Shown here: positions 5,176-34,696 of the stretch, one piece after another
Layout: each line of letters begins with the position of its first letter
Numbering within the stretch: position 1 is the first letter of the stretch
NCBI GenBank assembly: GCA_003693705.1
Contig: RBZT01000644.1
Coordinates: 1 to 39,639 of the forward strand
Length of the DNA: 39,639 nucleotides
Reading direction: 5' to 3'
DNA from: Polymyxa betae A26-41
Lineage: Eukaryota > Protista > Endomyxa: Phytomyxea
The notes under the pieces: generated by a model
What the model was told of the DNA's origin: nothing
The model's database searches: none
Seen by the model: the letters and a program-made list of their open reading frames with translations, nothing else
Position numbers and translations under genes: made by a program

Positions 5176-6585
5176 ATGGCAGGTAAGATCACTGTTGTAA
5201 TAGCAGTATTCTGCCACCTGTTTGCCGATGCCAGTTGGTGCCTTCCATTCAGGAAGGCGTTCTCTGATTCAGATAGTGACTCGGAGTCGGCCTTTGGTCA
5301 AGATCTGCTGGTCTTCGAGGACAGTACTATGCATCATTTGAGGCCTAGTGAACAATTACGTATGGATATGTATGCGGCCAATGAGCCACATCCTGATAAA
5401 CATGTATATGACGGCGACGATGCGTATTTCACATCGCACGAGAAGCAGATTTTTGTAATCAACGATGGAGGTATTTAAGTGAAATTTTTGTATGAGAGAT
5501 CCAACATGTTGACCAGTTTCACGTACCGCCTCGGTACAACTTCGCTCATATCCGAACGTCGTTTCGCGGATTCTAGCTCTTAAAACTGTCCAGTCATTTA
5601 CAAGAACGATCGATTGGCGGATTGCAATGGACAAAGCCATCGATGAATTGCAAAGGTGCGGCATCGGTGGAACGACAACGACCATCGGTGAGCGCCAATG
5701 CAAATCCTCCTTTGCAGCGTTTTTGCATACTTTTTGTATGTGTTTTGTCTCAAATAACTTTGCAGTTGCTCGCAAACTATTGCTCAATCACCGCAATGTC
5801 GTGGCAGTCTACAATCTGGGCGATTCTCGCGTTGCACATTTGCGTTTCAACAAAAGGACTAAATCCTACGAATTCAGCGCGATCACAGAGGTCCAGAAGA
5901 GAGAGTTTGTCCAATATTTGTGATTGACGACGGCAAACTAATGGATTTATTAGCTGCGGGAACCATCCATTTCAGATCAGCGGTGATGAAAGCCGTTGGA
6001 AAGGACTTGGAGTCCTTCAGATGGATGAGTACAACTTCGAAGTTGAGGAAAACGATTTGATAATTGGGGCGTCGGACGGCCTGTGGGATGTGATGAATGC
6101 AGCCGTAAGACATTATTCTTCGTTTTCTAAAAACATAAATGCTCTTCAGGAAATAGCGCAAGTCGCCAGCAGGGTTTCTATCGATGCTTTGGCGATGACT
6201 TTAAAAAGATTGGTGAAAACTGATACCGTAAATCGATTCTTAGTTCTAAAGCTAGATTTAGGCTTTGCAAAGGCGAGAGAATCAAAAACGCAGGGACGAT
6301 ATCACCGTTGTGATTGGGCATATAGTGCATCCCAATTCAAAGCAGTGTTCCACAGATAAAAACAACTACGAATCGATAAAAGCGACCCTCAAGATAATCG
6401 CTCAAAGCATAGATATTACTGAAATCAGAGACTCTCAGCAGAAAAGAGATACTTCTGAAAGCAGCAAAGCTCAGCAATCCAGAGATAAACCAGAACGTAG
6501 CGGTGGTTCGTTTTTCTCTCCTGGCTATCGCAAGCAACGTTTATTTTCAAAACGGTTAAGTATGGTATCAGTACGAACTATATAA
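5176..6585 (+). CDS. Signal-peptide-bearing PP2C/PPM phosphatase, PTC7-like subfamily (about 6 exons); candidate secreted effector
   Basis: N-terminus MAGKITVVIAVFCHLFADASWC. Spliced motifs are PHPDK..GDDAYF, VINDG|V, GGTTT, NLGDS, HPFQI, DLIIGASDGLWD and DDITVV. GT-AG introns restore the frame. Confidence 0.85.
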
Positions 6586-6750
6586 ATAGACCCAATCAAA
6601 ATGAATCCACGACTGTCTAAATTCATCATGATCCATGAATCATGAAGCCATCCTTCCCATCCAGGCCTTCTTTAATTTTTTTGCGTGATGATAGCGGAGC
6701 CTCCTTCAGGAAAATTATTGTTGTCACTGTAGCCATCTCGGAATCCATCC

Positions 6751-32826: not shown

Positions 32827-33183
32827 GAAATAGTTCGGAATATCAATATGAGAAACAGCAGTCATTGGATCCGATGCGGAGTTTGCAGAAGACAGAGCGT
32901 CGCCTCGAAGCATCTCTCATGTCACTTGCCGGTCTCCCTCTCATTCTGTCCTTTTTCTCATTCTTTCTCTACCCGCCGCGTAGCCAACCAAAGTTTACTG
33001 TACGGCGTAACAGACTTTTTCTGGCGCGCAACTGCTGTATGATACGCATCCTCTCGTGTTCATTATGTTGTTCAAGTAGAAGACTCGAATAAAAAAAGGG
33101 TTCAGCCAAGTATGATGATGTGCGCAACCCTCGAGTGTTAAGACTTATCATTCTGATTCAGTGATTCGGTGATTCCCACCACC

Positions 33184-34696
33184 ATGCAAGTTCATGTTGT
33201 CTTGATGGCGGCGGCCGTACTGGTCCTGGGGGCAGCGGCCGCCTCGGTCGACCAGGAATTCTGGTCTCTTTGATCTCCCGGATGAGATCTTGGAGCGGTG
33301 CTGTGTCTCTGCAACAGATCTGGGACATCTCAGTCTGACATGCCGCCGACTGCTTCACGTGGGCCGTCACGAGGTCGTACAGGTCCTGTTCGAATCTCCC
33401 AATACCCGGATCCACCAGGTCTCCCAGCTGGTCCGTATTCTTGCCGTCCGAGTCCGGTTCGACCACGAGACGCTCGAACTTGTGAAGAAAGTTCCTCCGC
33501 AGCTGGTCATGGGAGTGTATCAGTTAATTATGTGGAATGAGATATTGAGCAATGAGGAGAAGGCACAACTGCTGCGCTGTATGATCTTAAGACTGGGCCT
33601 GACATTGATGAATGATGTGAACGAGTTCGTAATTCGTGTCAGTGATGGTCGTCCCTTACCCGGACTTCCTGTCCTTGGTATATCCGTTCCGTCACAGACT
33701 CTTCCGGAACCCCTTCTTCTTGTGATCAAGCAGAATGTTAAAGAGAGCTTGCGTTGGTATCAACGAAGGTTCCTGGGCCAAATCCTCATTCGACTGCAAG
33801 CGTGGAAAGCCCGTAATATCAGGAATTCTGATCATCATAATCTTGAAAACAAACTCCGCCCTCTTTATCCGTTCCCGTTCAATCATGTTTTCAGACCTTG
33901 CTCCGGAGTCGCCCTCCATATTCTGAAATCGTTTCCCAAACAATCTCATCCTCTTGCTGAGTGGCAGAACTTACTGGCTCTGCGCGAGCTCGGGATCGTG
34001 TTCAAGCTCCATAGCTATCTTCAGTATGTCCAGCTTCCGCCCGAATCCATTCCGGATATCGTTCCACTGCTACAGTTACGCAGCTTTAAGGAAGTTTTGG
34101 ACCTATTACGCTGGCTGATCATTGCCAGATGCACCGATGGCTATCAACAGACCCATGATGGACGTACTGGCACGGACCAGGCTCTGCAATGGCTGCGGAT
34201 CCCGTTTATTCAGCGACAGATTCTTTCAAAGCCAGAAACGTTCGTCGATCACGCCAGCGTAATGTTTGAATCAAAAAACACGGATTTTGTCGTGGGTCTG
34301 GCTGAGCTTCCGTTCATGCCTGAGATCATCAATGAATGCTTGTGGAGGAATCACGGCTGGACACTTCTGACGCTAGCCGTTGTCTTTATGAAATACGATA
34401 TTGCCCAGATTCTGATGCGAATTCCGAATGCGTCTTTGTTCGTGAAGTTTCCGGACCAGACTACCGTCCTCGATCTCATTCTTCGATATAAAATTCGCTG
34501 TTCTCGGAAGCAGACTATCGAATTCTTAATGTGCTCGGAATTCATCAAACTGATGCTCTCGAACATCCCAGAGCTGAAAAAATCGCTTAGGTCTGTGATC
34601 GATGATCGGTATATGGCTCAGTTCCGTTGTCTGGTTCGATATCCGCTTTTTTGGAAGATCCCAGAAGATGTTAGATCTGAACTCATTCAGTATTAA
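33184..34696 (+). CDS. Signal peptide + F-box + helical body + C-terminal ankyrin-like repeat protein; leader out of frame with the body (pseudogene or sequence error)
   Basis: ATG 33184 gives MQVHVVLMAAAVLVLGAAAASVDQ. The +1 frame gives GLFDLPDEILERCCVSATDLGHLSLTCRRLLHV (F-box pattern LxxLPxEIL...L..l..tCrrl), which runs into the 468-aa ORF containing HGWTLLTLAVVFMKYDIAQILMRIPNA...DQTTVLDL. Confidence 0.7.

Follow-up and report, generated by a model that had tools for sequence, protein, structure and literature searches.

Among the closest described counterparts of the proteins considered here are PbRING1 and PbE3-2 of Plasmodiophora brassicae, which have working signal peptides and E3 activity; PbE3-2 targets host RD21A (bioRxiv 10.1101/2022.10.26.513834). 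Ankyrin and RING domains abound in the P. brassicae secretome, which includes 11 RING ligases with signal peptides (PMC8595600). We analysed a 39,639-nucleotide stretch of its relative Polymyxa betae A26-41 (contig RBZT01000644.1, assembly GCA_003693705.1), referred to below as the window. Three unrelated genes in the window belong to families in which an N-terminal hydrophobic leader precedes a ubiquitin-ligase or phosphatase domain: gene 1 is a PTC7-like protein phosphatase 2C (PP2C), gene 2 a helical protein with a C-terminal RING-H2 finger and gene 3 a broken copy of an F-box protein with an ankyrin-like solenoid (Table 1). P. betae is an obligate root endoparasite with an Illumina draft genome of 1,001 contigs, 27,085,946 bp and 45.1% G+C (PMC6328671). 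Plasmodiophora resides wholly within the host cell (PMC4815078).

A structural secretome study of 2025 covered 714 P. betae proteins that were selected using SignalP 6, had their signal peptides removed and were retained after DeepTMHMM-positives had been dropped (PMC12503489). Its supplements list poly_jg9577.t1, which belongs to a sequence cluster of ten confined to P. betae and whose F-box spans residues 9-37 of the mature protein. Also listed are four proteins of 611-836 residues, each with a C-terminal RING, and the PP2C-like protein poly_jg651.t1, whose structural cluster includes a PP2C of Albugo predicted to be secreted. F-box and RING proteins are unmentioned in the main text, which reports five P. 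betae ankyrin proteins and names the largest P. betae cluster 'orphan helical proteins' (PMC12503489). That published predictors pass such architectures as secreted is independent support for secretion of the families described here, the agreement being one of architecture.

Gene 2 resembles PbE3-2 and PbRING1 in being a plasmodiophorid protein with an N-terminal signal peptide or leader, a C3H2C3 RING close to the C-terminus and no transmembrane domain, and the same action, ubiquitination of host proteins, is proposed for it from sequence alone. It differs in its helical domain, for which no Plasmodiophora relative is detectable, and in its RING, a divergent one with a long insert and interrupted by an intron. 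The family of gene 3 is matched in layout by Legionella AnkB, and also by the Orientia Anks, Agrobacterium VirF and Ralstonia RipG/GALA: in each an F-box is followed by a repeat solenoid in an intracellular parasite, and docking to host SKP1-CUL1 with redirected ubiquitination is the action proposed. The bacterial proteins are injected by type III or IV secretion, whereas the P. betae family would use its own endoplasmic reticulum (ER) signal peptide. There is no sequence homology between them, the P. betae repeats are far more degenerate and the P. betae family occupies at least 30 loci. The secreted ankyrin proteins of P. brassicae and Spongospora subterranea (17 with SKP1/BTB/POZ; PMC12503489) likewise join a solenoid to a cullin-RING module and are lineage-expanded, but the module there is SKP1/BTB, while in the P. 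betae family it is an F-box. The papers found in a literature search for F-box effectors concern bacteria almost exclusively (Legionella, Orientia, Agrobacterium, Ralstonia and Chlamydiae), and the phrase 'secreted F-box' was not found in them. Secreted RING ligases are thus already known in the sister genus, whereas a large leader-F-box family was not found described.

Among phosphatases, Toxoplasma gondii PP2C-hn is a rhoptry phosphatase sent to the host nucleus. Both PP2C-hn and Albugo candida A0A024GCJ0, whose secretion is predicted, share with gene 1 the combination of a PPM phosphatase with a signal peptide or leader in an intracellular or biotrophic parasite. Gene 1 differs from them in its PTC7/SpoIIE-like subtype, assigned by motifs, and is known here from its sequence only. 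Identity of gene 1 with poly_jg651.t1 is not established.

Leader sequences and proposed export

Leaders were scored by Kyte-Doolittle hydropathy as the mean over 19 residues. The leaders of the three genes score 1.9-2.4, and elsewhere in their true exons no stretch reaches 1.6. In the same scan of the exons of genes 1-3 no membrane-spanning stretch follows the leader, and no K/HDEL tail was seen. By eye and by hydropathy the leaders have n-, h- and c-regions, with an acidic flank and small residues (Ala, Ser or Gly) after the core. They are signal-peptide-like and, judged by these features, resemble ER-type signal sequences. The leader is kept in 7/7 loci of the RING family, in 16 of about 22 N-termini examined in the F-box family and in 2/2 PP2C paralogs. 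According to the earlier note, all three genes couple a leader to a domain with no obvious transmembrane anchor downstream. Genes 1 and 2 agree with this description in both leader and domain motifs; the window copy of gene 3 departs from it, as its leader and F-box are out of frame.

The best reading of these observations, and one towards which we lean, is that the three families are exported and act on host ubiquitination and phosphorylation. An ER-type N-terminal signal would be joined to domains able to act only in the cytosol or nucleus. Because the plasmodium lies within the root cell, ordinary secretion should place the proteins on the host side. Gene 2 would be a secreted RING-H2 ligase in which the solenoid selects host substrates and the RING recruits a host E2, as in PbE3-2. 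Members of the gene 3 family would be secreted mimics of the adaptors of SKP1-CUL1-F-box (SCF) ligases: the F-box would dock onto SKP1-CUL1 of the host, and host proteins would be brought in for ubiquitination by the ankyrin-like solenoid, which is variable. This family would evolve by tandem duplication and decay, with the window copy among the decayed members. For gene 1 the proposal is a PTC7-type phosphatase, secreted or exposed at the surface, that would dephosphorylate host proteins; this is the least certain of the three. Cleavage of the leaders, export, host targets and activity are all parts of this proposal.

The RING-H2 family

Gene 2 was read as five exons. The first, read from its ATG at 27164, has 294 codons and begins with the leader. 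All eight C3H2C3 zinc ligands are present with canonical spacing across the last intron. Pfam searches of genes 1 and 2 were made on single exons, each searched alone. The last exon of gene 2 gave zf-RING_5 (E 5e-4), zf-RING_2 (E 1.7e-3) and zf-C3H2C3 (E 1.9e-3); the best RING profile score for this exon was 20.4 bits against a cut-off of 27.9 bits, and the paralog L039 scored 18.8 bits. The genome holds six paralogous loci, and all seven loci of the family bear the leader. In the DNA fetched for two of the paralogs, L038 and L039, the gene likewise ends in a RING-H2 finger.

A membrane helix encoded by the T-rich stretch within gene 2 was considered and rejected. The corresponding T-rich stretches of the paralogs are unalignable and one of them shifts the frame; the stretch was therefore taken as an intron.

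The AlphaFold model of exon 1 is all helical, with a predicted local distance difference test (pLDDT) of 73, and forms a helical solenoid. Its closest solved folds are of the ARM/HEAT type with Z of at most 8.7, which is unspecific. A profile built from seven paralogs of the N-terminal part was searched against 1.84 billion representative proteins and gave two environmental matches, a 392-residue protein with its own leader (P0005, Logan run ERR12035942) and a 218-residue fragment from the Joint Genome Institute (JGI). No Plasmodiophora relative of this presumed substrate-binding part was found among these representatives. P0005 is the sole clear outside relative of the N-terminal domain and might derive from a different phytomyxid.

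On contig C591 a paralog of the RING family is followed directly downstream by a gene at 73601-74503 on the minus strand (L034:2-904), which belongs to a further leader-bearing orphan family. This family has eight loci with open reading frames (ORFs) of 320-500 codons, and its member on contig C838 adjoins a copy of the F-box family. Assignment of the C591 gene as an F-box gene was rejected, there being no Pfam support, and it was kept as a separate leader-bearing family. Elsewhere in the genome, leader-bearing families may lie together.

The F-box family

The body of gene 3 gave 69 six-frame matches at no fewer than 30 genomic loci, many of them with stops. The copies are often in tandem (contigs C35, C222, C309, C602 and C725). 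In the 16 leader-bearing N-termini the leader is in the frame of the F-box and lies 5-25 residues before it, and at least seven leader-bearing copies have intact ORFs of 432-519 codons. In a tree of 14 long members, a leader-bearing core clade with support 100/99 includes the window copy; leaderless, long-branched relatives are also present, the leaderless distant paralogs being L023, L025 and L027. A single gain of the leader is not favoured by this tree, in which three changes are required.

When the DNA of the window copy is aligned with its two closest paralogs, a single-base frameshift is evident between leader and F-box, so that the copy as it stands encodes no leader-F-box fusion. The copy is either a pseudogene or the product of a consensus error. 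The break itself is probably real because Illumina coverage is 225x; the alternative is a chimeric consensus of a multi-copy family.

Domain assignment was made on an alignment of ten sequences, comprising the window copy, eight genomic paralogs and P0001. The Pfam F-box-like profile matches six of the ten (best E 7e-7) and is sub-threshold in the window copy (E 0.033); the F-box profile matches three of the ten (best E 7e-8). Ank_2 matches two family members (best E 1.6e-4), and no ankyrin profile of Pfam matches the window copy.

The structure of the gene 3 body was predicted using AlphaFold with the paralog alignment. The model is all helical, with a pLDDT of 77.5 and a predicted template-modelling score (pTM) of 0.77. 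In an exhaustive structure comparison of residues 210-470 the top rows are nearly all ankyrin-repeat proteins with Z 7-8.2, the ankyrin domain of Legionella AnkB being among the closest neighbours (Z 7.7-7.8), and the closest shapes in the ESM Atlas are all ankyrin proteins with template-modelling scores of 0.3-0.46; for helical repeats, Z 7-8.2 and template-modelling scores below 0.5 fall in the grey zone. Foldseek, run with the family model on the PDB, returned no hit with an E value of 0.001 or below. The earlier note had called the repeats ankyrin. Pfam lends this no support in the window copy; the Ank_2 matches in the family and the ankyrin fold neighbours both support it weakly. By this modelling the solenoid is at most ankyrin-like.

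Word-based searches outside the genome, with the window body and with the family profile, returned just two hypothetical proteins of Beta vulgaris, and from these searches the family appears to be Polymyxa-only. The two proteins, P0001 and P0002 (BVRB_019220 and BVRB_018920, on contigs of about 1.1 kb and deposited as B. vulgaris), belong to the Polymyxa F-box family. P0001 is identical to the contig C591 paralog, residue for residue in the alignment, and for this reason BVRB_019220 and BVRB_018920 look like P. betae contamination in the sugar-beet assembly.

Prediction of a complex between residues 1-70 of the window body and full-length SKP1 (P0004) gave a score of 0.02, which is not evidence on binding in either direction. 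A canonical SKP1 gene with three exons is present in the genome (L042, contig C882), together with a divergent SKP1-like gene that has an unusual C-terminal end (L043, contig C675).

A further step is offered tentatively, as possible rather than probable. This lineage-specific tandem family of signal-peptide-delivered F-box adaptors could be a eukaryote-to-eukaryote counterpart of AnkB and GALA that uses the host SCF; it could perhaps also correspond to the 'orphan helical' cluster and stand in for the ankyrin-SKP1/BTB families of the gall-formers.

The PP2C family

The six exons of gene 1 have frame-keeping GT..AG borders. The leader has a short basic start, a hydrophobic core of about 13-19 residues and small residues, followed by an acidic Ser/Asp run. 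It lies with the first PP2C motif in a single open frame from the ATG at 5176, so that no splice model is needed to join them. The motifs GDDAYF, NDG, GGTTT, NLGDSR, SDGLWD and DDITVV follow in the expected order over successive exons, and the Asp-motif order of PPM/PP2C enzymes is also present in the single genomic paralog, L041 on contig C709, which shares the exon layout of gene 1 and likewise begins with a hydrophobic leader. Exon-wise Pfam matches are under the cut-off, with SpoIIE at E 0.034 (14.5 bits) and PP2C at E 0.07-0.1 (13.3 bits). Among PDB sequences one exon had a single weak local match, a plant PP2C structure that aligns in the region of the DGLWD motif. An exon-wise search of the whole genome with the SpoIIE profile gave no match. 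The language-model look-alikes of exon 1 are secreted pre-pro-peptides, all with scores below 0.9, and serve as a lead only. A further copy in tandem, upstream of gene 1, retains the C-terminal end only; its upstream part has been lost beside a Copia element. On this sequence evidence the case for export of gene 1 is the weakest of the three.

The introns of gene 1 are very short (34, 34, 45, 46 and 78 nt). In the one at 5920-5953 (34 nt), a CTAAT branch-point-like motif stands 10 nt ahead of the acceptor. A 70-nt intron at 5183-5252, right behind the start codon, was rejected.

Weighing the alternatives

Several points weigh against export. The leader cores have 16-22 hydrophobic residues, long enough for uncleaved anchors, and the leader of the PP2C paralog is without a clean small-residue cleavage motif. 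For all three domains the Pfam matches on the window's own pieces are under the curated cut-offs. A frameshift breaks the window F-box copy, and stops interrupt both of its nearest relatives. The exon borders of genes 1 and 2 were set by eye, from DNA alone, and the poly_jg entries of the published secretome agree with the window genes by architecture, not being mapped to loci. The earlier note had gone on to infer an effector set of an intracellular parasite that rewires host ubiquitination and phosphorylation. Its premise about lifestyle is borne out: P. betae is obligately intracellular in plants and not free-living. This lifestyle, the kept leaders and the RING precedent in Plasmodiophora favour the inference, whereas the broken F-box copy, the weak PP2C case and the absence of a cluster count against it.

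The leaders could instead be uncleaved signal anchors, the products being type II proteins of the parasite plasma membrane or endomembranes. They would then either be displayed on the parasite surface facing the host cytoplasm, and so remain host-directed without being soluble effectors, or take part in membrane traffic of the parasite itself. In favour of such an arrangement, one isoform of yeast PTC7 carries a membrane helix at its N-terminus, the cleavage motif of the PP2C paralog is unclear and the cores are long for signal peptides (17 residues in the F-box family and up to about 22 in the PP2C paralog). We nevertheless regard anchoring as unlikely. An acidic flank and small Ala, Ser or Gly residues lie past the hydrophobic core, a lumen-facing RING or F-box would be without partners inside the parasite, and the published pipeline dropped DeepTMHMM-positives yet retained F-box, RING and PP2C-like entries (PMC12503489). 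Mis-modelled N-termini are a very improbable source of the leaders. The true starts would then be downstream or in other exons, and the products would be parasite RING, F-box and PP2C proteins of the usual cytosolic kind. The gene models were built from DNA, leaderless distant F-box paralogs exist and a GT..AG pair stands directly behind the gene 1 start codon; removal of the corresponding 70-nt candidate intron, however, breaks the gene 1 frame, and the leaders are conserved in frame with the ATG preceded by stops in many paralogs.

The last alternative concerns the F-box family, gene 3 in particular, which might be a decaying selfish repeat family that is now functionless, with the co-occurrence of three leaders due to chance and to selection of the window. 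Stops and frameshifts in many copies fit this account, as do the broken state of the window copy and of both its nearest relatives, the position of copies among dispersed repeats, and the distances of 6-18 kb between the genes with housekeeping genes in between. We consider it distinctly unlikely, since leader-bearing copies with long intact ORFs persist, leader and F-box are kept in copies that are just 25-50% identical elsewhere, and the family has neither a transposase nor terminal repeats attached to it. Effector families, moreover, typically show birth-and-death with pseudogenes. Export of the three families to act on the host is the reading preferred here.

Genomic context

The window has about 45% G+C, short introns and eukaryotic gene structure. 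Genes 1, 2 and 3 are unrelated and 6-18 kb apart, with housekeeping genes in between. The UPF1 gene starts 165 bases past the end of gene 1; gene 2 has a NOL9/Grc3-type kinase gene a few hundred bases away on its upstream side. Several dispersed repeats are found at 16-21 kb of the window, and a repeat-rich stretch at 29-39 kb contains gene 3. The earlier note had placed the three genes in blocks rich in transposable elements (TEs) and separate from housekeeping genes. This is not confirmed, as UPF1 and NOL9/Grc3 adjoin genes 1 and 2. A two-speed effector compartment fares no better: the dispersed repeats are real but interleaved with ordinary genes, and gene 3 is the only one of the three within a repeat-rich stretch. 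The three genes form neither a cluster nor a separate compartment, and the idea of a toolkit in a TE-rich compartment is not supported.

Other elements of the window were recorded. A unit of about 105 nt at approximately 16212-16327 recurs on at least 20 other contigs at 95-99% identity, often in pairs about 300 nt apart, and resembles a short element that is young and in high copy number. At approximately 17763-18732 lies a dispersed repeat, about 970 nt long, of which there are at least seven copies at 87-95% identity; it is without a recognisable protein domain and might be a transposon of the non-autonomous kind. A small ORF at 21838-22275 (minus strand), located between the repeats and gene 2, encodes a signal-peptide-like leader and then a Cys-rich stretch; it has no Pfam match and is a further candidate secreted protein by its sequence. 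The ORFs at 30025-30243 and 32740-32913 (both minus strand) are small paralogs that flank a 2.7-kb repeat-rich segment. Over 92 nt they are 92% identical, and this common stretch encodes a hydrophobic C-terminal tail rich in Ala and Leu.

Table 1. Features of the window, in order of position (numbering from the first nucleotide).
Feature	Position	Strand	Evidence or remark
Copia-type long terminal repeat (LTR) retrotransposon (gag, integrase, reverse transcriptase)	41-3658	-	Pfam RVT_2 3.8e-54, Retrotran_gag_2 5.2e-26
Truncated PP2C fragment, C-terminal	4403-4597	+	Last PP2C motif and similar tail in open frame
Gene 1, PTC7-like PP2C with N-terminal leader	5176-6585	+	Six exons, 390 codons, frame-keeping GT..AG borders
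Gene 1 leader	5176-5244	+	Hydropathy 1.90; leader kept in paralog L041
Gene 1 exons	5176-5470, 5517-5687, 5766-5919, 5954-6104, 6150-6227, 6262-6585	+	Read by eye
UPF1 helicase, first exon (housekeeping)	6751-7245	+	Pfam UPF1_Zn_bind 8.9e-39
Voltage-gated-type ion-transport channel gene	11413-13593	+	Pfam Ion_trans 1.5e-18; between UPF1 and repeat block
Gene 2, leader, helical solenoid of about 580 residues and C-terminal RING-H2	24752-27164	-	Five exons, 679 codons
Gene 2 exons	27164-26281, 26214-25882, 25731-25265, 25154-24970, 24922-24752	-	Frame-keeping splice sites, read by eye
RING-H2 finger of gene 2	24794-25020	-	C-x2-C-x28-C-x-H-x2-H-x2-C-x15-C-x2-C, split by intron 24969-24923
Gene 2 intron 2, T-rich	25732-25881	-	Hydropathy 2.03 if read through
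Gene 2 leader	27087-27164	-	Hydropathy 1.90; leader in all 7 family loci
NOL9/Grc3-type polynucleotide kinase (housekeeping)	27534-28520	-	Pfam NOL9_C 2.3e-16, CLP1_P 1.3e-12
Gene 3, broken leader/F-box/ankyrin-like copy	33184-34696	+	Leader and body ORFs overlap in different frames
Gene 3 leader frame	33184-33270	+	Hydropathy 2.24
Gene 3 body frame	33206-34693 plus stop	+	Open reading frame
Single-base frameshift of gene 3	33255-33262 (about)	+	DNA alignment with two nearest paralogs
F-box of gene 3	33269-33397	+	LPDEIL start, C-R-R-L end; modelled as three short helices, residues 7-43
Degenerate ankyrin-like helical solenoid of gene 3	33890-34673	+	Model residues about 210-470

Implications

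P. betae transmits the rhizomania virus to sugar beet and is unculturable, and its effectors are known from predictions alone. The F-box family is the part most deserving of follow-up, while the RING part is an addition to the established secreted RING ligases. If the F-box family is exported, it would be a case of a eukaryotic parasite hijacking host SCF ligases by secreted adaptor mimics, which has so far been documented for bacteria and viruses. If true, many orphan secreted proteins would gain an identity and a testable mechanism, with SKP1 docking and variable target binding. With the RING family, a mechanism already proven in clubroot would be extended to another genus, but the substrate-binding domain differs. 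In practice, the families would help to short-list candidates for interaction with the host, as well as host targets for resistance breeding.

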